From NCBI RefSeq assembly GCF_902713615.1, contig NC_052149.1, positions 222,125,623 through 222,189,622 of the forward strand: a DNA stretch of 64,000 nucleotides, read 5' to 3'. The DNA is from Scyliorhinus canicula. Taxonomy: Eukaryota. The notes under the pieces were generated by a model. The model had not been told where the DNA came from. It made no database searches and was given only the letters and a program-made list of their open reading frames with translations. The position numbers were made by a program, and so were the translations under genes. This document shows, in pieces, positions 2,934 through 64,000 of the stretch. How positions within the stretch are numbered: the first letter of the stretch is position 1; every line of letters begins with the position of its first letter.

Positions 2934-3664
2934 GGGCGCGATTCTCCCAAAACGGGAGAAATCGTAAAGCTGCCGTAAAACCCGGGCGGGTTTTATGGCA
3001 GCGCGCCCCTTCCCGACCGGGGACCGATTCTGGTCCCCGGTCGGGGCTAGCAGCCCGACGCCGTAGGCTCCGGCAAGACGGGCTTAACGAAAATCGTTTA
3101 AGCCCGCTTGCCGGAGTTAGCGCCGGCTGACGCGTCATATGACGTCAGCCGCGCATGCGCAGTTTGGAAAACTCCAACCCGCGCATGCGCGGGTGACGTC
3201 ATCGCGTTTTTGCGCGAAACCCGCGCATGCACGGGCCGGGTTGCCCCTCAGCCGCCCCGCGAATGGATACTGCGGGGCGGCGGAAGGACAAGTAGTGCGC
3301 GGGCATCGGGCCCGCTGCCCGCGATCGGTGCCCACCGATCGCGGGCCCATGGCACCCTTGGCACGGCCGTGGTACGGCCGTGCCAATCGGTGCCATGGTT
3401 ATTAATAGCGAGTTTGTGACGCCGTTTTTACGAACGGCAAGACCAGGTGTGTTTGCCGTTCGTAAAAACGGCGGAAAGGGCTGGAACTTCGGCCCATCTA
3501 ACAGCTGAGAATCGCTGCCGGCCGTAAAAAAACGGCGGCAGCGATTCGGGTCGGGACTTCGGCGGGGGGGGGGGGGGGGGGGGAATAGCGGGAGGGCGGC
3601 AAAAATGTCGGGAAGGCCCTCCCGCTATTCTCCCACCCGTCGTGGGGGGCGGAGAATTTCGCCC
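2934..3664. mobile_element. GC-rich Harbinger-like MITE
   Basis: TIRs GGGCGCGATTCTCC / GGAGAATTTCGCCC; 3-bp near-TSD ATT/ACT; CpG-rich with internal palindromes. Confidence 0.75.
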
Positions 3665-4080
3665 ACTATATAAATGTAAGCTGTTTATTATTTTCATATG
3701 TTATCCTGGATGGTAAGAGTAATAGAACTACACAATCAGAAGTGGAAGACCCACAGCCTAAACTGTCCTTATCCATTATCTACATTTCCAAAAATGTCTT
3801 AGACTGTAGAATTCCAATGTTAGCTGATTTTTAAGCCCCTAACCCAGAGACATGAAAGCTAATTACAATGTGTCCTTGGTGTCACATTGGCTCATGCAGC
3901 ATACCTGGAGGACAAACGTAAGGTGTTTATGACACATTACTACAATACGTCAGGTCAAAATAAATGAAGATGCACGTCTAGACCCTGTGAAAGTCCAGAC
4001 ACATGGGCCTCTGTGAGAATTCCTGGAAAGTTACAAAGAAAATGGATAATTTCACTGTTTCCCGGCACCCTCCACAAATA

Positions 4081-4316
4081 TCTCTTTTTTTTGTTTTATA
4101 AATTTAAGAGTACCCAATTCATTTTTTTCAATTAGCGGGCAATTTAGGATGGCCAATCCACCTACCCTGCACATTTTTGGGTTGTGGGAGTGAGACCCTG
4201 GCAGACACGGGGAAAATGTGCAAACTCCATACGGACAGTGACCCAAAGCCGTGATCGAACCTGGGACCTTGGCGCAGTGAGGCAGCAATGCTAACCACTG
4301 TGCCACCGTGCTGCCC
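4081..4316 (-). mobile_element. Short V-SINE, AT-rich tail
   Basis: tRNA head and GTGTGGAGTTTGCAC V-domain; TSD CTCCACAAATA. Confidence 0.9.
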
Positions 4317-4479
4317 TCTCCACAAATACCTTGACTTGGAGATATTCGGAGATTCCGTACAGTTCTGTGGCACTTACCTGGGTAGTTAACCAGCAAATGT
4401 TAGGCACATTAAAACCTGGTCTAACAGCTAGCTAACTACACAACGAGCTTCCATTCAGCCCCCTATTCCCCTCAACTAC

Positions 4480-4840
4480 ACCCAAACCAACCGACTACCC
4501 CCCTTGACTACCTCCCAACGCTGACTACCTTCCTCGATCCAACTGCCTTCCAGACCAGACCCAATTAACCCTTGATCTGTCTACAATCCCAACCAGACCA
4601 AACCACCCACCAACCCAACCCAACCTCAATTTCTGCTTAAGTCTGGCACCTTAGACCACTCAGCCATCCTGACAACTTACCTACCCAGACACCTTACCCA
4701 CCTCACCAACTTACACACTGACCCACACACTCACCTACCTGCCCACCATCCTCTTACCCACATACACACCCATGAACCCATCCTACCCATTCACTCACTT
4801 ACCCATTAATCCATTCATCCATTCACTCATCCACTCACTA
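4480..4840 (+). repeat. C/A-rich low-complexity tract
   Basis: G-depleted, with degenerate ACCC/CCAT/CACT units. Confidence 0.7.
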
Positions 4841-4919
4841 AAATTAGACTGGACATTTTAATTTACCATACAGCAGCTAGTGCAGTAAAAGGGGGCATGA
4901 CCTGTTATGACCCGACGAC

Positions 4920-5270
4920 TTTGCGGATGACGCAAAGTTTGGCGGAGTTGCTGATAGTGCCGAGGATTGTCAGAGGATACAACAAGATTTAGATAGATTG
5001 GAGACTTGGGCACAGAAATGGCAGATGAAGTTCAATCCGGACAAATGCGAGGTGATGCATTTTGGAGGATCAGATCTCGGTTTGAATTATATTGTAAATG
5101 GCAGAACCCTGAGGAACATTAACTTATAGAGGGATCTGGGCATACAGGTCCACAGTTCCCTAAATGTGGCAACACAGGTGGCCAAGGTAATTAAGAAGGC
5201 ATATGGCATGCTTGCCTTCATCAGCCGAGGCATTTAGTACAGGAGTTAGGAAATCATGTTGCAGCTGTAC
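4920..5270 (+). mobile_element. CR1-type LINE RT fragment
   Basis: FADDAKFGG...IQQDLDRLETWAQKWQMKFNPDKCEVMHFG. Confidence 0.9.
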
Positions 5271-5499
5271 TACACTTTTCTTTGTTCTACTCCACACTGA
5301 GATTGTTCCCCAAATTAAGATGCACTCTGCATTTCTTTGGCAACCAGGCTTGGAAGATTGCACAGCAGCCTTGAGTTAGGAGAAATTCTGAGCGCAGCAG
5401 CAACCTATCTGTCATTACCTTGCTCCGAGGATTTGGGCCATTTATCATCGTTGACTGTACCTTGATATGAGGACAACGTCTGCCCAGAGTCACGAGCTT

Positions 5500-5975
5500 C
5501 TGCCAGAGGTCTTTGTGTGAGCGAGTAGACCTATTTTCCACCTGTTGACCTTTGAGTACATGGGGCAGGACCCCACAGGGTAATACAGGATTTGCTTCTT
5601 TTCCTTCTCTGCCATCACTCTGTCTCACCATTGGTGCATTGGGACCCAAAACAAGATGAAGATTGATGCCCAATTTGTTGCACTTTGCACAATTTGTGAG
5701 CAAGCTCTCCCACTTGTGGAGAGCTTCAGAGTGACTCTGAAGTGTTTTCTTTTGTCTTTCAGACATTTGAGTGTTGACAGAGGATCTGAACGGGGTGATG
5801 AATTTTGGCCCTGAGGACATAGTGGGCAGTCAATGGAACTCAATTTTGCAGGAGTTGTGCCTGAATGTTTGTGGAGCAGGCTTCAAGAAGGGCACAAGTA
5901 TTTGTTCGATGGTCCTTCTATTGAATCCGAAGGATGAGGCCGAGGCATTGCTGATGGAGATGGACCTTGGCCTGC
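5500..5975 (-). mobile_element. RTE/BovB-type LINE 3' remnant
   Basis: Frameshifted HQQCLGLILRIQ*KDHRTN...IQAQLLQ...KRKHFRVTLK...CPMYSKVNRWKIGLLAHTKT, resembling RTE C-termini. Confidence 0.6.
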
Positions 5976-6164
5976 GCCTGACTTTGTTTAGCATGGGGAC
6001 CTTGTTGTTTAACATGGGGACCTTGGACCACCGTCATTGTCCACACAGTTTTGACAGTTTTCAGTAACATGCCAAACTCTGATGATATGAACCATCTTGC
6101 CGTCTTCTGCCTTTGCGGTTGACGAGGCACAGGAGCCACCATGGATGCCGCTACCAAAAAGAAG

Positions 6165-6482
6165 ATTTTATTTTGGTTTGATTTATTGTCACATGTACCG
6201 AAGTACAGTGAAAAGTATTTTTCTGCGGCCGAGGGAACGTACACAGTACGTACATAGTAGACAAAGAAATAATCAACAGAGTACATTGACAAATGGTACA
6301 TCGACAAACAGTGTTTGGTTACAGTATGGAACAAGGGCCAAACAAAGCAAATATATTAGCAAGAGCAGCATAGGGCGTTGTGAATAGTGTTCTTATAGGG
6401 AACAGATCAGTCCAAGGGGGAATCGTTGAGGAGTCTTATAGATGTGGGGAAGAAGCTGTTCCTATGTCTGAATGTGCGGGTC
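6165..6482 (-). mobile_element. Rex1/Babar LINE 3' end
   Basis: Same 3' UTR as 45710-46070, ending CTTTTCACTGTACTTCGGTACATGTGACAATAAA. Confidence 0.75.
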
Positions 6483-6699
6483 ATCATCGGAATGCTCAAG
6501 CCTTGATCTCGACCACCTGCAGAGAACAGGGGACAACCTCCAAAAATCCCTCAGTACTGTACTTTAATTTTGTGCTCAGGTCCCAGAGGAACTTGAACCC
6601 ACGACCTTCTGACACAGAGGTGAGAGTGCTACCAACTGAGCCACAGCCGGTAGAATACACAGTGCAAATGCCTGTCGAGCCACTGATGCAAAACTACTT

Positions 6700-6995
6700 T
6701 GTGGTGAATGTAACTTAGTAATTCACACTGTATTTACCAATACCATTGTAAGCGCAGTAGCGTTATCCGACCACTAGGGGGAGTAGCTTTGGGAATGCTC
6801 AGGAGTTTGTACAGGGCTCCACCCTTGGCTCCGCCCATGACTCCTCCCCCTGGACTGCTGTATAAATACCCTTGTCCAGAGCCAGCCTGCAGTTCATCGA
6901 GAGTTCAACGGGTAACAGGCTGGCTCTGTAGTAAGTCGATTAAAACCACTGTTCATATCTTAAAGCACGTGTCTAGTGAATTGATGGTTCCATCA
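6700..6995 (+). mobile_element. Gypsy solo LTR
   Basis: TG...CA termini; 5-bp TSD TACTT (6695-6699 / 6996-7000); TATAAAT and ATTAAA inside; highly similar to the reverse complement of the LTR at 22492-22796. Confidence 0.92.
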
Positions 6996-8314
6996 TACTT
7001 TTCTTAATTCCTACAGCACTGTTGTAAAAAAAGGACATAATAAGCCTTCTAAAGGGAATTGGATCAATACTTGAAGGATAAAAAATTGTAAACTTTTGGG
7101 ACAAGAGTGGGGCTAACTGGTGGCCTTTTGAAAGGACTAGCATAGACATGATGGGCTGAATGGCCTCTTTCAGTGATAGATTTTATGATTCTCTAATGCA
7201 TTGTTTTTTTAAAAGACATAATGCTATTAATATCCACAAAGAGTTGAGATGCATGAAAGACACTGTGAGAAAGAAACTTTCATCTCTTCAGAGCGGTTTG
7301 GATCTGAGCCCAGGTCCTAGAGGTGAATGAACAATATTCGAACATATTGTACTTCCCAGTCCCACATCAGAGAGCAAGGCGCCCTCTATTCCATCTGGGC
7401 TGTTTTTGACCTCAGTTCCCAGATGGAGAGGGACAGTGTTCCAAAAAAAAACTGTCAAACCGTTCTGCAGCAAACATCTGGCTGCAATCTTTGTGTGTGA
7501 TAGGCCAGCAGTGAGATAGACAAAGAGGAACAGTAGAGGCCATACAATATTCAGTAACATAAGCTCTGAGGCAGCTACAAATATCGCATGTATAAATCGA
7601 ATTTGGTGAATAATGATCAAAAAAGCTTTGGACTTTTTGATTCAGAATCAAATCTGGTTTTATCCCAAAAATCTAGTGAGTTGCAGAATGCTGTGATGGA
7701 ACCATATGTTGCTGTAATTCTGCTTTACAGCATTCAGCAATAGAATCTTCCAGAATGTCCCATTTTTGCAGATGTTCCACACAAACTGTGCGTGTGTTGA
7801 AATCATCAAAGGACACACAGTATTTAAAGGATTAATCATTGTATCATGATATTTGCCCTCCAGGGAATAATAGTGTGTTAACAGTTTGTGAAATATTTCC
7901 TAAAACACAACACAAATTATGGTTTCAGTAGTTCAGCAAATTAAACTTCAGAAGCATTCCATCAGAGCAGAAGGGTACAATTACACAGATGAACCTGGGA
8001 AATTTTAAATCTTTGTGCCTGCACTAAAGATATCAGCAATTAAACATTCCTTCCCATGAGCCAATCCGATGGTCTTCCGAGTAGCCAAGTCGCGTAGATC
8101 CGAAAGGTCCTAGATTTGATCGCAAGGGTCTGATCCTACCCAGAGTATTACCAGAGGGTGTTCCAATTGGTTACTTGATGTTAAGAGCAGTATATGCACC
8201 AGTTGTGTCCTCTTTGGGCATCTGAGGTTTAGTTAACAGGCAGGTTTACCAACTAAACCATCACTAAAAGCACCGGTCTCTCATATTTTAAAATGGACTA
8301 TTTAGGGAACGCTC

Positions 8315-8540
8315 ATAGAAACCCTACAGTGCACAAGGAGGCCATTCGGCCCATTGAGTCTGCACCCGCCCTCCAAAGGAGCACCCTATCTAAGCCCACT
8401 TCCCCGCTCTATCCCCGTAACCCAACCTAACCTGCACATCTTTGGACTGTGGGACTCCTGGAGAAACCCCACGCAGATACAGGGAGAAAGTGCAAACTCC
8501 ACACAGTCACCCAAGGCCGGACTTGAATCTGGGTCCCTGG
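8315..8540 (-). mobile_element. HE1-type V-SINE, CR1 tail
   Basis: V-domain and ATGGGCCGAATGGCCTCC tail. Confidence 0.85.
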
Positions 8541-9729
8541 TCCACAAGGAATTTGGAAAATTTTAATTCAACTGATCCCCAAAAGAAGGCCTGGATGTTT
8601 GCCATAGGTGTAAAGAGCGCAGAATTCCACAAGAATTGGTAACGGGAATTATGCCCGCAAGAGTCCCTGGAGTAATAGTCCCCACCGCCCCCACCAGTGA
8701 CAAAATGGTTTCCCGCCTTGAAAGGTCGGGAACCCCATTATCATATATTTAAATTTCGTTAGCAAGTATGCCCCCCCCCCCATGTTGTAAATGCTCCTCC
8801 CCCACCCGGCACGTGACGTCAAGTTGGCGCAGTTTAAACAGGTTTGTAAAAATGGGAACTGGCGAACAGAATCCCAACATGGGCACACAGGTGTGTACAG
8901 CAACCAGGGGAGAAGGTCATTCTCAGGCACTGCCCCTGGCATTGCCCGGACACTACCGTTATGGGGAGGGCAGGGGGTTGGGGGGAGGGGTTCCATGGGA
9001 TGGGGGGCTGGTTCCATCATTCTATGTTTATCTTCCTGACTCCAATCTGTCAAGAGCCAAGGTTACTGGCAGGACGGGCACATTGAGAGCTCACTCCGCC
9101 AGCATGTCTTTGGGGGACCCACCTCCTTGATTGTTTTGCCTAAATGTCAAAATATATGGTGGGGGAAAACTGGCAGTGCAGCGGATAGGCTACACCCCAC
9201 TTTCCCTGCCTGAGTTACACTTCGTCAAAAAATTGGAAAATTCCGCCTGTAAAATTAAAACGTTACTATCAGTAATGGTGACCATGTAATAAAAGCATAA
9301 AATGCTAGCAGTGAGGGGGATCATAATCGGGCATTACCCCCACGAACTTGATCAGTGCCCATGGCAAAGCTGTGGGCCCTCTGGCCGGCTCAGTTGTGGG
9401 GGTTCACCTTATCCATTGGCCATCAGGGACGGTTCCCCATGCCTGTGGGTGAGGCCTCAATGTCTGTGGGGGGGATTCCCGTGTCCGTGGGGGGGGCGGG
9501 TCTGTGAGACGGTGCCTTTTACTTCAATCAAAGATTGGGGTACCCTTTTTTAAAAAGTGCTCCCATCTCAAATTCCCTTTTGGCCCTGCCCATCCAGCTG
9601 GCTTTGTGAATATTGCTTCAGCTTTGAAACTTCACAGAGTGCTGTTCAGTACAGGGAGAAAAGCCAGCAGTGCAGCCTCCAAACTTCACGCCTGAGGCAG
9701 CACCCATTTCATTTTTGGGAAGATTCCGA

Positions 9730-10360
9730 CCAATGCTTCAGGCCCATGATGACCCTCCATCAGAACTGAGCAAAGACAGAAATGCAATAGGTTTAGAACA
9801 AGCGAAAGGAACAGGGAAAGGAAGAACAAAAGGAAAGGTCTGGTTTGGGTCGAGGACAGGATTGAATGACAAAAGGTTTTGTGGTAATGGTAAAGTGAAT
9901 AAACAAAATATGTGTCTAGCTGGGGTAAGAATGGTTGGACAGCAGCTTTCCAAAAGAAAAGTGAACAAATAAACAAAATGGATGCAAAGTTTATGATCTA
10001 AAAATTTTCAACACAATATTGAGTGCAGAAGGCTGTAGAGTACCGAGTTGAAAGATGACTTCGAACTTGCATCGAGCTTCATTGGAACACTGTAGCAGGC
10101 CGAGGGCAGAAAGGTCAGAGTGGGAGTAAAGTGGAGAATTTTGAAATTACAAGTGACATGAAGCTCAGGTTCGTACTTGCAGATTGAATGGAGATGTTCT
10201 CCTCCGATCACCCAGTCTGTGTTTGGTCTCCCCACTGGAGAAAAAGGCCACAATGTGAGCAGTGAATACAATGTACGAAACTGGGTGAAGTACAACTAAG
10301 TTGCTGTTTCATTTGGAAGGAGTGTTTGGGGCCTTGGATGGTGAGAAGTGAGGAGGTAAG
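9730..10360 (-). mobile_element. Degenerate Penelope-like 3' fragment (GIY-YIG remnant, 3' UTR and decayed hammerhead)
   Basis: Frameshifted ...TIQGPKHSFQMKQQLSCTSPSFVHCIHCSHCGLF...EHLHSICK.EPELHVTCNF; CTGATGGA-GGGTC..GGCCT-GAAGC at about 9735-9767. Confidence 0.7.
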
Positions 10361-10529
10361 TGTTAATTGTTGCAAAAACTTACCGAGTTCACTAATGTCC
10401 TGAAGGGGAAAGGGCCTACCATCCTTACCTGTTCCGGCCTATACATAACTCCAGATCCACAACAATGTGGTTGACTGTTAACTGCCTTCAGAAAGCCATT
10501 CAATTGTATTCAAAAAGGCAGATGACCGT

Positions 10530-10870
10530 CTTTTTCTTCGAGAGTCCCTGGATTCTCCGGATGAAGAAGGATGACCTGCTTCCACATTAAAAATCAAATT
10601 CTCTGGTGGCTGGGGAGTCCTAGGTGGGACCTACAATCTGTCACAGGTGCGGTAGATGGCAGTTGGAGGAATGGGTGGGTGGGGTGCCAATGGGTGGGTG
10701 GGATGCCCAGGTTCCTTTTGCTGTCGGCACTTGGCTTCAACTTACTCTGGCGAGGCGTTCAGCACTTGCTGGGTGCTTTGGGCCCAGGATTCCCAGGTGC
10801 CAGTCAGGTGGCCGGGGGTGGCGGGTGGGGGGGAATGTTGCACTTTTTCCAAAGAGGTGTCACCTTCAAC
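10530..10870 (-). mobile_element. RTE-type LINE 3' remnant
   Basis: LKVTPLWKKCNI-like coding remnant and a GGGACT...GAAGAA tail. Confidence 0.5.
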
Positions 10871-10879
10871 ACCTTTACT

Positions 10880-11100
10880 TTTTTTTTAAATTTAGTGTAC
10901 CCAATCATTTTTCCAATTAAGGGGCAATTTAGTGTGGCCAATCCACCTAGCTTGCACGTTTTTGGGTTGTGGGGGCGAAACCCACGCAGACACGGGGAGA
11001 ATGTGCAAACTCCACACGGACACTGACCCAGAGCCGGGATCGAACCTGGGACCTCAGCGCCGTGAGGCGGTTGTGCTAACCACTAGGCCACCGTGCTGCC
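10880..11100 (-). mobile_element. Short V-SINE
   Basis: TSD CTTCAACACCTTTACT (10864-10879 / 11101-11116). Confidence 0.92.
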
Positions 11101-12129
11101 CTTCAACACCTTTACTGAGACGGAATACCATTATCCTTAACCATGGCAATAGGAAGAGGGCAATTCCAGCGATGACAGGAATGAATTAAGTAAACTGTCT
11201 GGGGTTAAAGTGTATATTTATCATAAAATCTATTTCTGCCACTGGATTTCATAGGCCTGAGTGTTTTTGCCCAAGGGGTGCTCGCTCTCGATTGGCCTGG
11301 AAATGGCGCAAAACACTCTTCCAACCATAATCGGCCCCGGATTCATGCTGACTAGCCAAAATAATGGGCAGCCTGTGTGAAATGTGTGCTGGCAAAGGCT
11401 CACCGATGCTGGGGAAGGGAGGAAGAGGGCAGGTGCTGAGTAAAAGGGAAGATTTGGGCTGACATTTCCAATGTGGTCCCTCAGGGGGACAGCTGCTGTG
11501 GAGATGTCTCAAGGAGCTGCTGACCTGAGAAAAATAAACTGTAATCGAAAGACAATGCATCGACTGTCTGGGCAGTGTATTGAAACACAAACCTCAGTCC
11601 CCAGGCAACTTTTTAAAATTTTATTTCAGCCCTGACATTTCACCCTGTCCTGGATCAAGGTTGCAGCTAAAAGGTAAAGGCCGCCCGCCAACTGTAAAAG
11701 CAGAGGGCCACTTAAAATTGCATTCAAATGGCTCCTTAATGGGCTAAGCTGCCTGCTTGATAGTCAGCGGGCGCGCTCAAAGATCGAAATATCGCATGAG
11801 TGCCCGATGATGCCAGGACGCGCACCCAAAGTCTCTTTGTAAGATTTAATCCGCTTCTAGTTCAGGCACACACCTGCCCAAGCACATAAAATTCTAGCCA
11901 TAATCTATAGAGCAGGATTCTACAGCCTCCCAGCCGCGTGTTTCTTGGCGGCGCGCTCGTGGCGGAAATCTTTGCTCCCGACACTGTCAATGGGAACCCC
12001 ATTGAAGCCGCCCCATGGCACCGGGAAACCCAGCAGGAGGGGCTGCGCTGCCAGCGGGACCAGAGCTTAAACAATCTTCAGAATATCACGTATCAGCAAA
12101 CCTTCTTAACAATTAGCTATAAGAAGCAA

Positions 12130-48924: not shown

Positions 48925-49245
48925 TCAGGCCTTCGAGATTTCAGACCAGCCAGATCTATTCCTGGGGAGGAGGGCGGACGCCCTTGCCTTTGCCTCCCTG
49001 ATCGCCCGCCGTAGAATCCTGTTTGGCTGGCGGTCAGCAGCACCGCCCAGAGCTGCAGACTGGCTGTCCGACCTCTCGGAATCTCTCCAAATGGAGAAAA
49101 TCAAATTCGCCATCCGAGGGTCGGACGACGGCTTCCCAGAATGTGGGAGCCATTCATGCAATTGTTCCGGGACCTGTTTGTGGCCAACGAACAAGAGGAA
49201 GAATAGCCGGGTGGCCAAGAATCAGGGGAAAATGGACGGGAATCG
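48925..49245 (+). mobile_element. L1-type LINE ORF2 C-terminal fragment (5'-truncated, frameshifted)
   Basis: Translates to ...ASLIARRRILFGWRSAAPPRAADWLSDLSESLQMEKIKFAIRGSDDGF/WEPF..., typical of fish L1 ORF2 C-termini. Confidence 0.7.
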
Positions 49246-49247
49246 GG

Positions 49248-49396
49248 TACAGTAAGAAGCGTTACAACACCAGGTTAAAGTGCAACAGGTTTGTTTTTAA
49301 TCACTGGCTTTTGGAGCGCAGCGTACTCTTCTTATTCTTTAAAATAGACACTGTTGGACTTTAACCTGGTGTTATAACACTTCTTACTGTAGCCAC
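49248..49396. mobile_element. Older non-autonomous Penelope pLTR-derived inverted-repeat element (continues at 53213-53248)
   Basis: tacagtaagaagcgttacaacaccaggttaaagtgcaacag ... ctgttggactttaacctggtgttataacacttcttactgta: diverged inverted copies of the pLTR end. 53214-53248 is the reverse complement of about 52471-52503. Confidence 0.85.
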
Positions 49397-49522
49397 TGTT
49401 GCTCTTTAAAGTCGCCAGTATGATGTTATGTCCCAACAGCATCGCCAATACTGTCAACTACACCTTACAGCTACAATAATCTGTACTTAACTTCAGGGCG
49501 ACCGGCACTGTGCAAGTGGATA

Positions 49523-49684
49523 ACAGTAAGAAGTCTTACAACACCAGGTTAAAGTCCAACAGGTTTGTTTCAAACACGAGCTTTCGGAGCACGGCTCCTT
49601 CTTCAGGTGAATGGAAAGGCTTGTTCCAGAAATGTTTATATAGACACAGTCAGAGATGCCCCGGAATGCGAGCACCTGCAGGCA
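49523..49684 (-). repeat. 3' pseudo-LTR of the Penelope-like element
   Basis: acagtaagaagtcttac...gcacctgcaggca; identical by eye to 52507-52668. Confidence 0.95.
49575..49609 (-). ncRNA. Minimal type I hammerhead ribozyme (3' copy)
   Basis: Minus strand CAC-CUGAAGA-A-GGAGC-CGU-GCUCC-GAAA-GC-UC^GUG: CUGANGA and GAAA cores, 5-bp stem II, palindromic AGCU stem III, CAC/GUG stem I. Predicted cut between 49578 and 49577. Confidence 0.88.
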
Positions 49685-49754
49685 ATCAAATCATCAAAGA
49701 TGCAGAGAGAGAGGTAACTCCAGGTTAAAGAGGTGTGAATTGTCCCAAGCCAGT

Positions 49755-52508
49755 TCAGTCGGTAGGCATCTGCAAGTCCAGGCTTGTTGGTGGGGGCCGA
49801 ATGTAATGCGACATGAATCCCAGATCCCGGTTGAGTCCGCATTCATGCGTGCGGAACTTAGCTATAAGTTTTTGCTCAGCAATTTTGCGTTGTCGCGTCT
49901 CCTGAAGGCCTCCTTGTAGAATGCTGACCCGGAGATCAGAGGCTGAATGTCCTTGACTGCTGAAGTGTTCCCCAACTGGAAGGGAACAGTCCTGCCTGTT
50001 GATAGTCGCACGATGCCCGTTCATTCGTTGTCGCAGTGTCTGCATGGTCTCGCCAATGTACCACGCTTCGGGACATCCTTTCCTGCAGCGTATGAGGTAG
50101 ACTACATTGGTCGAGTCGCATGAGTATGCGCCGCGTACCTGGTGGGTGGTGTTTCCACGTGTAATGGTGGTGTCCATGTCGATGATCTGGCATGTCTTGC
50201 AGAGATTACCCTGGCAGGGTTTTGTGGTGTTGTGGTTGCTGTTCTGAAGGCTGGGTAATTTGCTGCAAACAATGGTTTGTTTGAGGTTGCGCGGTTGTTT
50301 GAAGGCCAGTAGTGGGGGTGTGGGGATGACCTTGGCAAGATGTCCATCCTCGCTGATGATGTGTTGGAGGCTGCGAAGAAGATGTCGTAGTTTCTCCGCC
50401 CCAGGAAAGTACTGGACGACGAAGGGTACTCTGTCAGTGGTGTCCCGTGTTTGTCTTCTGAGGAGGTCGGTGCGGTTTTTTGCTGTGGCGCGGTGGAACT
50501 GTCGATCAATGAGTCGAGCGCCATATCCCGTTCGTACGAGGGCATCTTTCAGCATCTGTAGGTGTCTGTTGCGCTCCTCCTTGTCTGAGCAGATCCTGTG
50601 TATACGGAGGGCTTGTCCATAGGGGATGGCTTCTTTAATGTGTTTCGGGTGAAAGCTGGAGAAGTGGAGCATCGTGAGATTATCTGTGGGCTTGCGGTAA
50701 AGCGAGGTGCTGAGGTGACCGTCCTTGATGGAGACGAGTGTGTCCAAGAATGGAACTGAATTTGGAGAATAGTCCATGGTGAGTTTGATGGTGGGATGGA
50801 ACTTATTGATGTCATCGTGTAGTCGTTTCAGTGATGTCTCGCCGTGGGTCCAAAGGAAAAAAATGTCATCGATGTATCTGGTGTATAGCATCGGTTGAAA
50901 GTCCTGTGTGGTGAGGAAGTCCTGTTCAAACTTGTGCATGAAGATGTTGGCATATTGAGGTGCAAATTTGGTCCCCATGGCTGTTCCGTGCGTCTGGATG
51001 AAGAATTTGTTGTCGAAGGTGAAGACGTTGTGGTCTAGAATGAAACGGATGAGTTGCAGAATTGCGTCTGGAGATTGGCAGTTGTCGGTGTTGAGGACTG
51101 AGGCTGTTGCAGCAATGCCGTCGTCATGGGGGATGCTGGTGTAGAGTGCCGAGACATCCATTGTGACGAGGAATGTTCCTGGTTCAACTGGTCCATGGGT
51201 GCTGAGTTTCTGTAGGAAGTCCGTCGTGTCGCGACAGAAGCTGGGTGTACCTTGTACGATGGGTTTCAAGATGCCCTCGATGTGGCCAGAGAGGTTCTTA
51301 CACAGGGTCCCATTGCCTGAAACGATAGGACGGCCTGGTGTGTTGGCCTTGTGTATTTTCGGGAGGCAGTAGAGATCTCCAATGCGGGGATTACGTGGGA
51401 TGAGAGCACGTAGGGTGTTCTGAAGATCTGGATCTAAGGTCTTGATCAGTCTGCTGAGTTGGCGGATGTGTTCCTTGGTTGGATCTGCGGGTAACTGCCT
51501 GTAGTGTTCCTGGTTGTCGAGTTGTCGGTATACTTCTTTGCAGTAGTCTGTTCTGTTCAGTATGATGGTGGCCCCTCCTTTGTCTGCTGGTTTGATGACG
51601 ATGTTGCGGTTGGTCTTGAGAGTGCGGATGGCGTTGCGTTGTGCTTGGGTGACGTTTGAGGCTGCCTTGTGATTGCGAGTGATGAATCTGGCATTGACAC
51701 GACTTCTGACGGCTTGAGCATACATGTCGAGTCTAGGGCAGCGGCCTTCCGGAGGGGTCCAATTTGACTCTTTCCTTTTCGGTTGCTGCACTGCAGATCT
51801 CGCGGTCTGCTGTTCCGGTTCATTGGTCGTGTCCCTGGGTTCGCTGTCGGCCTCTTGGGGTCTGTGGAAGAATTCCCGGAGCCTCATTCGCCTGATGAAT
51901 TCCTCCGTATCTGCCGCGAGACTGATGGGGTCCATTTTGGTGGTGGTGCAGAAATTGAGCCCTCTGCTGAGGACTTCGATTTCGTCTGGTTGAAGGGTGT
52001 AGTCTGACAAGTTGACAATGGATTTCCCTGTATTGTTTTCGACTGTTGTACCGGGAGAAGCTTGATTGCTGCTGGTGGTGATGCCAAGTTTCTCAAGCTT
52101 CCTGTTCTTGGTGTGCATGTAGGTGGCATAGTATTGCTGTCTCATCTGTTTGGCGGTGTTCCGCAGCTGGTCTGCTGTGTCCTGAGCGCAAGTTGAGAAT
52201 ATGGCCTCTCTCTTGGTTTCCAGGTTGCGTCGACTGCTGTAGAGTTGGTGTACGAGGTGTTTGAGGAGTGTGACAGAGGTGCGGTGGCAGAGTCTTTCAG
52301 CGTAGTCTGTGTTGTAAGTCGACTTGAGTGGGTTTTTGATCTGTAGTCCTTTCGGGATCTTGTCTGCTTTTTTGCATCTTTGTAGAAACTGAATGTCAGT
52401 GTCTATATGCGCGATCTTCCTGGAGATCCTCTCCACTTTGAGCCGGCAGTTTGCGGTGTCAATGGTAGCCATGATGTGGAGATGCCGGCGTTGGACTGGG
52501 GTGAGCAC
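49755..52508 (-). CDS. Penelope-like element (Neptune-type) reverse transcriptase + GIY-YIG endonuclease, intact ORF; likely ATG at 52472 (905 aa)
   Basis: Uninterrupted 917-codon ORF. RT motifs LPKIHK..PGRPIVS, LVTMDVSALYTSIP, QTHGTAMGTKFAPQYANIFM, YTRYIDDIF, PFLD. Cys-rich linker CQGNLCKTC, then GIY-YIG VVYLIRC...WYIGET...RMNGH. ATG lies in a strong Kozak context (atcATGG). Confidence 0.96.
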   Translation of the reverse strand: MLTPVQRRHLHIMATIDTANCRLKVERISRKIAHIDTDIQFLQRCKKADKIPKGLQIKNPLKSTYNTDYAERLCHRTSVTLLKHLVHQLYSSRRNLETKREAIFSTCAQDTADQLRNTAKQMRQQYYATYMHTKNRKLEKLGITTSSNQASPGTTVENNTGKSIVNLSDYTLQPDEIEVLSRGLNFCTTTKMDPISLAADTEEFIRRMRLREFFHRPQEADSEPRDTTNEPEQQTARSAVQQPKRKESNWTPPEGRCPRLDMYAQAVRSRVNARFITRNHKAASNVTQAQRNAIRTLKTNRNIVIKPADKGGATIILNRTDYCKEVYRQLDNQEHYRQLPADPTKEHIRQLSRLIKTLDPDLQNTLRALIPRNPRIGDLYCLPKIHKANTPGRPIVSGNGTLCKNLSGHIEGILKPIVQGTPSFCRDTTDFLQKLSTHGPVEPGTFLVTMDVSALYTSIPHDDGIAATASVLNTDNCQSPDAILQLIRFILDHNVFTFDNKFFIQTHGTAMGTKFAPQYANIFMHKFEQDFLTTQDFQPMLYTRYIDDIFFLWTHGETSLKRLHDDINKFHPTIKLTMDYSPNSVPFLDTLVSIKDGHLSTSLYRKPTDNLTMLHFSSFHPKHIKEAIPYGQALRIHRICSDKEERNRHLQMLKDALVRTGYGARLIDRQFHRATAKNRTDLLRRQTRDTTDRVPFVVQYFPGAEKLRHLLRSLQHIISEDGHLAKVIPTPPLLAFKQPRNLKQTIVCSKLPSLQNSNHNTTKPCQGNLCKTCQIIDMDTTITRGNTTHQVRGAYSCDSTNVVYLIRCRKGCPEAWYIGETMQTLRQRMNGHRATINRQDCSLPVGEHFSSQGHSASDLRVSILQGGLQETRQRKIAEQKLIAKFRTHECGLNRDLGFMSHYIRPPPTSLDLQMPTD

Positions 52509-52668
52509 AGTAAGAAGTCTTACAACACCAGGTTAAAGTCCAACAGGTTTGTTTCAAACACGAGCTTTCGGAGCACGGCTCCTTCTTCAGGTGAATGGAA
52601 AGGCTTGTTCCAGAAATGTTTATATAGACACAGTCAGAGATGCCCCGGAATGCGAGCACCTGCAGGCA
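52507..52668 (-). repeat. 5' pseudo-LTR of the Penelope-like element
   Basis: Identical by eye to 49523-49684. Confidence 0.95.
52559..52593 (-). ncRNA. Minimal type I hammerhead ribozyme (5' copy)
   Basis: Identical to the 49575-49609 motif. Predicted cut between 52562 and 52561, about 90 nt upstream of the ATG. Confidence 0.88.
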
Positions 52669-53689
52669 TTATCTTGATCTCACATGGCTGGTTTGAAGAA
52701 GTGGCTCTGAATCTGCTGGGCTCATCCGTCTGGTAGCGATCGTTGGTCTTGAACTTGGCTGGCTGTTCCTGCTACATTTGGCTGGCACGGGCCGAATTCA
52801 AAGGAGGCTAAACACATGGCTGTGTCTCTTTTTATCCCTCTAAGGTTTCGCGCTTTTTGGGGCAGTCCTTAATCTTGGACCCAATAATTCGCCAGGATTC
52901 GATTACTGTCTTCAAGTTCGGCCAATAAAGGGGCGGGTGCTTCGTGGCTGGGCGGGTCCTGAGCGGTCAGTGACCTTGGCAGTTGGGCTCTCTGAGTAAA
53001 GGGAGTGGCACCGATCAGTCTGTGGCTATACCGGTTTCTTGATTGGAGTCCTATTGTTCTGGGGAACGGGCCATTAAAATGCAAACGAGCGGGGGTTTCG
53101 ATCAGGTCTAGCTACCTGTGTTTCAGATACACATAGGCTCTGCATCTGTCTGAGTCCTGGGTTGGCCATAATTCCCATGGTCCTTTTCAGGTGGCCATCT
53201 CAGATGGCTACACCACCCCAGTCCAACACCCCCGCATCTCCACATCATTTTAAAGAGCAGTGTGGTTTGACCTTTAGAATCAAATAAACATCGAATTTCA
53301 TAGAATTGTCATGTCACTGAAAAGTAATGATTGAATTAGATTAGACAACCTTCCTCATATACTTAGAATTTTCAAAGTGATGTTGCAATACTGTATAAAT
53401 AGATTGATAGTTAGTGAAGCCACTTACTGTACAATTGAGTGACGTTAATTACCACAACTATTACAGTATATTATCTGTTAAAACTGTTTTTAAATAAATA
53501 TCTACTATTTTTAGATACTACCAAAGTAATATCTGTGGAAAAAAAATCCCAAAATTGGAAGAATAGGCTAAACTACAATAAAAACAGAAAATGCTGGATC
53601 AATTCAGCAGATCTGGCAGCATCCATGGAGAGAGAAACAGAGTCCACCGACAATATGGAAAATTGCCCGAGTCAGGATTGTCTTTAAAA

Positions 53690-63677: not shown

Positions 63678-63935
63678 AAGAAAGTGCTGGGAAAACCTCA
63701 GCAGGTCTGGCAGCATCTGTGGAGAGAGAAATGGAGTTACTGGGGGAATGCTCTGGTCCCACCCTCTGCATGAATTGCTGCAGGCGGGGCGCCAATTTGA
63801 CGGGCCTTTTAAAGGTCTGTTGACCTCGGGTGAGAAATTCCGGTCGGGGGTCAGGGGTAACCGGAACATCCCGCCCATTGGCTGCGAAAAAATGCCCAAA
63901 GCTTTGAGTCCATATGACTCTTCTTCAAAGCTGAG
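63678..63935 (-). mobile_element. Penelope-derived short element with decayed hammerhead, split by a MITE-like insert
   Basis: Minus strand TTGAAGA-A-GAGTC-ATATG-GACTC-AAAGC; conserved CTCAGCAGGTCTGGCAGCATCTGTGGAGAGAGAAA flank. Confidence 0.6.
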
Positions 63936-64000
63936 CTTTTGAACTTTAGTCACTGCTAACATAGGAAATGTAGCGGCCATTTTAGAAATAAAGAGCAATA

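Follow-up and report, generated by a model that had tools for sequence, protein, structure and literature searches.

Does the Penelope-like element (PLE) at this catshark locus carry a self-cleaving ribozyme in each of its terminal repeats, and if so, with which partner would that ribozyme act? The question arises from a 64,000-nt stretch of the Scyliorhinus canicula genome, the whole of which we refer to as the window. A sequence-only reading of it had proposed two minimal hammerheads with a palindromic stem III, able to pair and cleave together only in read-through transcripts spanning the full element. We followed this proposal from the layout of the element through the conservation of the motif in distant relatives to the likely pairing partner.

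An intact Penelope-like element with identical terminal repeats

The candidate ribozymes lie in two direct repeats (pLTRs) on either side of a long open reading frame (ORF), all read from the minus strand of the window:

49523..49684, minus strand: 3' pLTR, a 162-nt direct repeat, 100% identical to 52507-52668
49755..52472, minus strand: intact PLE ORF, reverse transcriptase (RT) plus C-terminal GIY-YIG, 905 aa from the ATG at 52472
52507..52668, minus strand: 5' pLTR, a 162-nt direct repeat

The identity between the pLTRs stops at both repeat ends, with no extension on either side, and the repeats are spaced 2984 nt apart. Joints that step back by 2984 were found in contigs from DNA and RNA libraries alike. 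Counted from the upstream GTG at 52508, as in the ORF list, the reading frame comprises 917 aa. Pfam recovered RVT_1 in it with an E of 9e-11 and GIY-YIG with an E of 3.7e-4, the latter at 21.2 bits and thus 1.4 bits under the Pfam cut-off of 22.6. A protein search with the ORF returned 4080 homologues, the best of them from Scyliorhinus torazame (91% identity), Heptranchias perlo (84%) and Mustelus asterias (83%); next after the sharks, at 35-45% identity, come turtles, ticks, echinoderms and amphioxus. The Pfam domains in the homologues are PF00078, PF28514 and PF26215, with PF01541 in some. In an alignment of 15 sequences (A1), the RT motifs are invariant, as are the GIY-YIG-type residues Y792, Y805, G807, R816, H820, E866 and N881. 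The element is an EN+ PLE with the arrangement pLTR-ORF-pLTR, and its sense strand is the minus strand of the window. The insertion is apparently young and intact; by eye, we saw no clear target-site duplication at 49522/52669.

A minimal hammerhead motif in both terminal repeats

Both pLTRs contain the same hammerhead motif, which we numbered base by base in the 3' copy:

49575..49609, minus strand: minimal type I hammerhead of the 3' pLTR, predicted cut 49578/49577
49609-49607, minus strand: stem I 5' strand, CAC
49606-49600, minus strand: C3-A9, CUGAAGA
49599, minus strand: extra unpaired A after A9
49598-49586, minus strand: stem II, GGAGC/CGU/GCUCC, 5 bp with a CGU loop
49585-49583, minus strand: G12, A13, A14
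49582-49579, minus strand: A15.1, G15.2, C16.2, U16.1
49578 and 49577, minus strand: C17 and G1.1
52559..52593, minus strand: hammerhead of the 5' pLTR, identical sequence, predicted cut 52562/52561

As RNA the motif reads CAC-CUGAAGA-A-GGAGC(CGU)GCUCC-GAAA-GC-UC^GUG, so that the catalytic core of a hammerhead (CUGAAGA, GAAA and U-C) can be read straight from the sequence. The G10.1-C11.1 pair corresponds here to G49598-C49586. Helix I consists of three contiguous base pairs (CAC/GUG), followed by a UU/UU internal loop and two further pairs, and the predicted cut falls 89 nt upstream of the ATG of the ORF. These positions agree with the sequence-only reading, which had placed the motif in both pLTRs on the sense strand (49609..49575 and 52593..52559, inside the identical repeats), with predicted 5'-OH ends at 49577 and 52561; the placement of these ends is right, and the claimed distance of 2984 nt between the copies is exact. 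It had also described the AGCU of stem III as unable to fold alone and as self-complementary. The sequence bears this out, since A15.1-U16.1 would close a loop of 2 nt, which makes a monomeric stem III impossible.

We then asked how often such a motif occurs in the window. The 32-nt motif has exactly two matches in the window and none in 100 dinucleotide shuffles, and the pattern CTGANGA-N8-24-CGAAAGCTC likewise has exactly two, with none expected. A strict structural descriptor of the min-HHR (minimal hammerhead) also selects these two sites only in the 64-kb window; it demands C3-G8 or U3-A8, a helix II of at least 4 bp with at most 2 unpaired nt at its 5' end, GAAA, a self-complementary 15.1-16.1 segment and a helix I of at least 2 bp. 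Two results could be taken to favor the view that a repeat sequence looks like a hammerhead by chance and is no ribozyme. A loosely written hammerhead pattern lacks specificity, with 13 matches in the window against about 5 expected, and the Rfam hammerhead families (Hammerhead_1, Hammerhead_3, HH9, HH10 and Hammerhead_II) match nowhere in the window at gathering thresholds, nor at E<=10 on 49200-49750. The Rfam miss is expected for a motif that lacks helix III, and it speaks to the coverage of the models and not to mechanism. Against the chance reading stand the full motif, with its chance expectation of zero, and the comparative data below.

Two relics lie beside the element, next to its 3' pLTR:

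49210..49331, minus strand: older pLTR-plus-tail relic with a dead hammerhead (local alignment to unit 81-205; repeat family D2)
49338..49390, plus strand: inverted relic of the 3' part of a pLTR (local alignment to unit 111-162; inverted repeats I1-I3)

The former has lost C3 and U4, has G12 changed to A and has a stem III that is not palindromic; the latter begins about 3 nt after the equivalent of the cut site. Within 49210-49394 the two relics stand head-to-head and make a 56-nt inverted repeat (84%). A sub-threshold Rfam match to MIR6027 is spurious and stems from this inverted relic pair (49243-49397), and two other such matches are noise.

Conservation of the motif in distant relatives

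Both copies in the window belong to a single insertion, as its two pLTRs, and do not count as independent evidence, and we therefore gathered relatives. In total, 85 loci were compared, 5 obtained by exact-protein look-ups and 80 by a metagenome scan with protein alignment (30-41% protein identity). On 358 kb of related loci, the strict descriptor matched 14 times, always on the sense strand. A covariance model (R1) built from 14 descriptor-picked sequences scored the window hammerhead at 40.4 bits (E 4e-7) and returned 41 matches: the two window copies, one weak extra match in the window and 38 in the loci. The matches in the loci are spread over 31 of the 85, all flank the RT match, and 37 of them are sense and one antisense. 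Matches lie on both sides of the ORF in L027 (17 and 3967), L025 (20 and 3439), L024 (1666 and 5090) and L058 (13 and 3468), and paired hammerheads in several loci are about 3.4-3.95 kb apart.

The helices of the motif are maintained by compensatory change. Since a MAFFT realignment of 11 sequences (A3) gapped stem I, we used alignment A2 and the model-based alignment A4 instead. In A4, which has 36 distinct rows, 91.2% of the cells are paired, compared with 57.0% after shuffling of the columns (none of 500 shuffles attains the observed value) and 31-39% after the partners were shifted by 1-3 columns. Covariation scores 0.857 in the alignment, 0.21 in the shuffles and 0.09-0.17 with shifted partners. 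Double-sided changes occur at all eight pairs of helices I and II across the 36 rows; pairing reaches 99.3% in helix II, three of whose four positions show 4-5 pair types, and 83.3% in helix I across the 36 distinct sequences. This covariation is partly circular, as the seeds were picked by a descriptor that asks for pairing and a palindrome and the model shaped A4. Neither seed choice nor model fit enters into the strand bias or into where the matches lie with respect to the ORF.

The core is conserved in the same set. C3-G8 occurs in 27 of the 36 distinct relatives and a compensated U3-A8 in 6, an unpaired nucleotide follows A9 in 35 of 36 (an A in 31), and the G10.1-C11.1 pair is G-C in 34 of 36. 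The sequence-only reading had expected a core shared across copies, and core and helices are indeed conserved, and covary, in distant relatives. Chance resemblance is scarcely credible to us and is refuted by these comparative data, in which the same architecture recurs on the sense strand beside the RT in 31 distant loci, with compensatory changes in helices and core and a strand ratio of 37:1. On these sequence comparisons, the identification as a predicted minimal type I hammerhead of the PLE min-HHR kind is well supported.

Several further matches were seen along the way. In Heptranchias perlo (L002), the one shark homologue whose DNA was compared, hammerheads stand on both sides of a shortened ORF (L002:3732-3780 and L002:6166-6214). 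They are partly decayed, with G8 changed to A in one and a helix II mismatch in the other, and the L002 element is a decaying member of the same family, from a distant shark. At L004:4001-10499, two PLE ORFs follow each other in tandem with a hammerhead (7751-7782) between them, and a tandem arrangement is expected for the family. The weak extra R1 match in the window, at 63889-63938 on the minus strand (16.7 bits, E 0.76), reads UUGAAGA-A-GAGUC...GACUC-AAA-GC-UU. It has an uncompensated C3-to-U change and no G12, and probably represents the decayed hammerhead of a different PLE family at the edge of the window.

Stem III points to pairing between copies

If the motif is a hammerhead that lacks its own helix III, the sequence between A14 and C17 should tell whether a second copy is involved. 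Among the relatives, the 15.1-16.1 segment is a tetramer in most cases (AUAU in 14, AGCU in 9, ACGU in 5, AAUU in 2) and otherwise a hexamer (ACGCGU in 2, ACCGGU in 1, ACUAGU in 1). Every one of these segments is self-complementary, and the only exceptions are the two weakest matches. None of the seeds had AUAU or AAUU, and no pair is modelled at these columns. As 15.2 and 16.2 are adjacent and unable to pair within one molecule, their covariation makes sense only with a second copy. The self-complementarity of stem III through four different tetramers and three hexamers thus points to copy-copy pairing, and it is the strongest argument for it that can be drawn from the sequences.

Folding energies were uninformative. 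The MFE fold of the pLTR RNA monomer is no better than its shuffles (z-score +0.78), and the explicit double hammerhead comes to -23.1 kcal/mol, compared with -23.4 kcal/mol for two open monomers. Cofolding yields an MFE dimer at -32.9 kcal/mol that swaps the near-palindromic stem II and not stem III; helix II at 49586-49598 (GGAGCCGUGCUCC) is itself nearly palindromic. Such a modelled helix II swap dimer could compete with dimer formation or help to nucleate it. The energy models are neutral on the double hammerhead; what speaks for dimer dependence is the maintained self-complementarity.

A promoter-like pair precedes the hammerhead

Immediately upstream of the motif, both pLTRs carry a box and an initiator-like sequence:

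49635..49642, minus strand: TATATAAA box of the 3' pLTR, 36 nt upstream of C3, putative promoter
52619-52626, minus strand: TATATAAA box of the 5' pLTR, the counterpart of the 3' pLTR box
49614-49608 and 52598-52592, minus strand: Inr-like CCATTCA, 30 nt downstream of TATATAAA

About 9 of 35 distinct relatives have TATAWA at 34-46 nt upstream of C3. From this arrangement, transcripts are predicted to start at about 49612 or 52596, some 6 nt before C3 and at the 5' edge of the hammerhead. If the predicted start is real, transcripts initiated in the 5' pLTR would hold the whole 5' hammerhead and would need no read-through from upstream, and cleavage would remove a capped leader about 35 nt long.

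The placement directly behind a TATA/Inr-like pair also fits another reading, that the motif is conserved mainly for a different role, as a structured 5' end or promoter-proximal element or in binding or positioning RT near an internal start of reverse transcription, with cleavage weak or incidental. The low in-vitro activity of metazoan min-HHRs (PMC4209133) would agree with this, as would the Poseidon PLE of Anolis carolinensis (PAc), whose insertion in vitro is unaffected by catalytic mutants of its hammerhead and whose cut site is without RNA-seq ends (PMC11167929). However, the conserved positions are those of the catalytic core (C3-G8/U3-A8, G5, A6, G12, A13, A14 and H17) and of the helices of the active fold, and a protein-binding hairpin alone would not be expected to keep a catalytic core. 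Moreover, plant, fungal and protist PLEs have efficient canonical hammerheads at the same place (PMC4209133). We consider a mainly non-catalytic role improbable, even when the contig ends described next are counted in its favor.

Contigs from RNA and DNA libraries

We compared 49300-52506 with assembled Logan contigs from three RNA-library runs and one DNA run. RNA-library contigs align with 0.8-1.2 kb of the ORF and differ from it at 0-1 positions, a match that could also come from DNA carry-over; it is compatible with transcription. Contig ends are piled up nowhere in this stretch, 49577/49578 included, as might be anticipated for a cleavage that is weak or incidental; assembled contigs display ends poorly, and the result decides neither for nor against a cut.

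The depth of the contigs is strongly uneven along the element. Summed word depth over 49514-49620 is 32352 in the DNA run and 3572-15017 in the RNA libraries, as against 18.9 and 11-45, respectively, over the 5' part of the ORF; the depth of the hammerhead-plus-tail segment is thus about 1700-fold above that of the 5' ORF, where summed contig depth is to be read neither as copy number nor as expression level. It is also enormous over 52403-52506, and depth increases along the element in the direction of its 3' end. This profile suggests 5'-truncated copies together with a hugely amplified short unit that bears the hammerhead, similar to a retrozyme or a SINE.

The ends of the homology carry further information on this unit. 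In many contigs, from DNA and RNA alike, the match gives way to unrelated sequence at 52471-52473, which implies that the usual 3' end of the family lies about 35 nt past the repeat, at the ATG of the ORF; the 3' pLTR of the present copy ends at 49523 without that tail of about 35 nt. At 49610-49613, close to the predicted transcript start, homology ends in some contigs. Fold-back joints between opposite strands, at 49566/49610, are present in contigs from two of the RNA-library runs, and one of their arms starts where the hammerhead has its 5' edge. On the right-hand side of the element, 53214-53248 on the plus strand is a copy of the 33-nt tail/leader segment that ends in ...CATCAT exactly at the usual 3' end of the family; it is a remnant of another, inverted copy.

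Proposed mechanism and pairing partner

We consider it very probable that this locus is a young, intact PLE with a min-HHR in each pLTR that acts as a double hammerhead. On its own, a copy would fold stem II (5 bp) and stem I, the latter made of CAC/GUG and a short continuation, and would lack stem III. Two copies that come together would pair through their AGCU segments in an intermolecular helix III of 4 bp and exchange the strands of stem I. The resulting double hammerhead would have two active sites. At each of them the RNA would be cut 3' of C17, so that one product ends in a 2',3'-cyclic phosphate and the other begins with a 5'-OH G (49577 or 52561). In vivo, such cleavage may trim PLE transcripts to the 2984-nt cut-to-cut unit or remove the short capped leader. 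The partner could be the other pLTR on the same RNA or the RNA of another PLE or mini-element, or the pair could be joined by a dimeric PLE protein.

The last two options make up a reading in which the ribozyme is the same but its partner acts in trans (full elements or short hammerhead-plus-tail copies) or within a PLE-protein complex, so that the 2984-nt cis geometry is incidental. As the terminal segment with the hammerhead is far deeper in the contigs than the ORF, trans partners should be plentiful, and hammerhead-bearing segments appear to vastly outnumber full elements; the fold-back joints in the RNA-library contigs fit this reading too. Separate molecules form min-HHR dimers in vitro (PMC4209133), and an Anolis PAc RNA with a single hammerhead is cut only with the PLE protein, a predicted dimer (PMC11167929). 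On the other hand, the relatives L027, L025, L024 and L058 keep paired hammerheads at unit distance, a partner on the same RNA is favored by local concentration, and the contig depths that suggest an excess of partners have the restricted meaning given above. We take action in trans or through protein to be a serious contender, though a little less likely than not. The claim of the sequence-only reading that pairing and cleavage could occur only in read-through transcripts nevertheless proves too strong, with trans partners seemingly abundant and cleavage in Anolis assisted by protein.

A more speculative extension of the double hammerhead, which we think unlikely, would turn the ribozyme at the 5' end of the transcript into a switch. 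Dimer-dependent cleavage would there separate capped, translatable uncut RNA from decapped RNA with a 5'-OH; the 2984-nt cut-to-cut form might be ligated to a circle that serves as a template of more than unit length; and the amplified module of about 125 nt, from transcript start to tail, might supply trans partners that tune the switch.

In summary, the locus provides an intact element with two perfect hammerheads and an apparent presence in RNA libraries, which makes it a reasonable substrate for cleavage tests. The comparative set of 36 sequences also re-derives the diagnostic features of the min-HHR independently.

Comparison with known hammerhead systems

The min-HHRs of PLEs were defined by Cervera & De la Peña in 2014, in both pLTRs and about 3 kb apart (PMC4209133). 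Their four emergent features are covarying families, a conserved nucleotide that separates position 9 from 10.1, a conserved G10.1-C11.1 pair and a palindromic 15.2-16.2, and a U3-A8 variant has been described among them (PMC4209133). Dimeric action was proposed for these ribozymes, of which dimeric and trimeric constructs cleave poorly in vitro and monomers not at all (PMC4209133); a later review summarises the dimer model, with Lünse et al. 2017 as its source for dimeric cleavage (PMC6765202). The shark motif and the PLE min-HHR are alike in being of type I, in both pLTRs, on the sense strand and about 3 kb apart, in lacking helix III and loop 3, in the palindromic 15.2-16.2, the short helix I and the dimer model, and in the unpaired nucleotide between A9 and G10.1 and the conserved G10.1-C11.1. 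They differ in helix II, which has 5 bp in the shark motif and 7-8 bp in the Schistosoma families, while the shark helix I has 3 contiguous bp. They also differ in what they are known from, PLE min-HHRs having been assayed in vitro (PMC4209133) and the shark motif being known from its sequence alone. We found no paper that describes the present shark PLE family. The locus therefore adds a clean example from a cartilaginous fish to the published rule that PLEs carry dimer-dependent minimal hammerheads in both terminal repeats. Dimer-dependent ribozymes of this type have been in the literature since 2014, which makes the example ordinary, if well supported.

The CChMVd (+) hammerhead belongs to a viroid and has a full helix III as well as loop-loop tertiary contacts. 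The work of De la Peña & Flores (2001), as cited in PMC4209133, places an extra A between A9 and G10.1 in the CChMVd (+) hammerhead, where the shark motif also has its unpaired A. Newt satellite 2 and ASBVd (Forster et al. 1988), to the extent that PMC4209133 and PMC6765202 recount them, have an unstable helix III, so that a single motif is inactive and paired copies share an extended helix III and cleave. In those same accounts they keep a helix III of 1-3 bp with a small loop, in tandem repeats of about 250-330 nt. The shark element, in contrast, has helix III cut down to a 4-nt palindrome and its copies 2984 nt apart.

The PAc element of Anolis carolinensis shares the RT plus GIY-YIG architecture of the shark element. 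Cleavage by its hammerhead depends on protein and on C3/G8, the hammerhead is dispensable for insertion in vitro, and no RNA-seq ends fall at the cut site (PMC11167929). Protein-assisted cleavage has thus been demonstrated for PAc, whereas the shark motif is a prediction from sequence.

The closest parallel to the depth profile is offered by non-LTR retrozymes and SINE-like hammerhead elements, whose type I hammerheads are related to those of PLE pLTRs and which are short, non-autonomous and highly amplified (PMC7229834; bioRxiv 10.64898/2026.07.22.740005). A 2026 preprint ties animal retrozymes to PLE pLTRs and includes one chondrichthyan (bioRxiv 10.64898/2026.07.22.740005). The amplified retrozyme units are probably matched by the excess of the shark hammerhead-plus-tail segment, and a circular RNA intermediate between two cuts has been proposed for retrozymes. 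The shark element itself differs from them in being autonomous and coding, with 2984 nt from cut to cut compared with about 170-400 nt in retrozymes.
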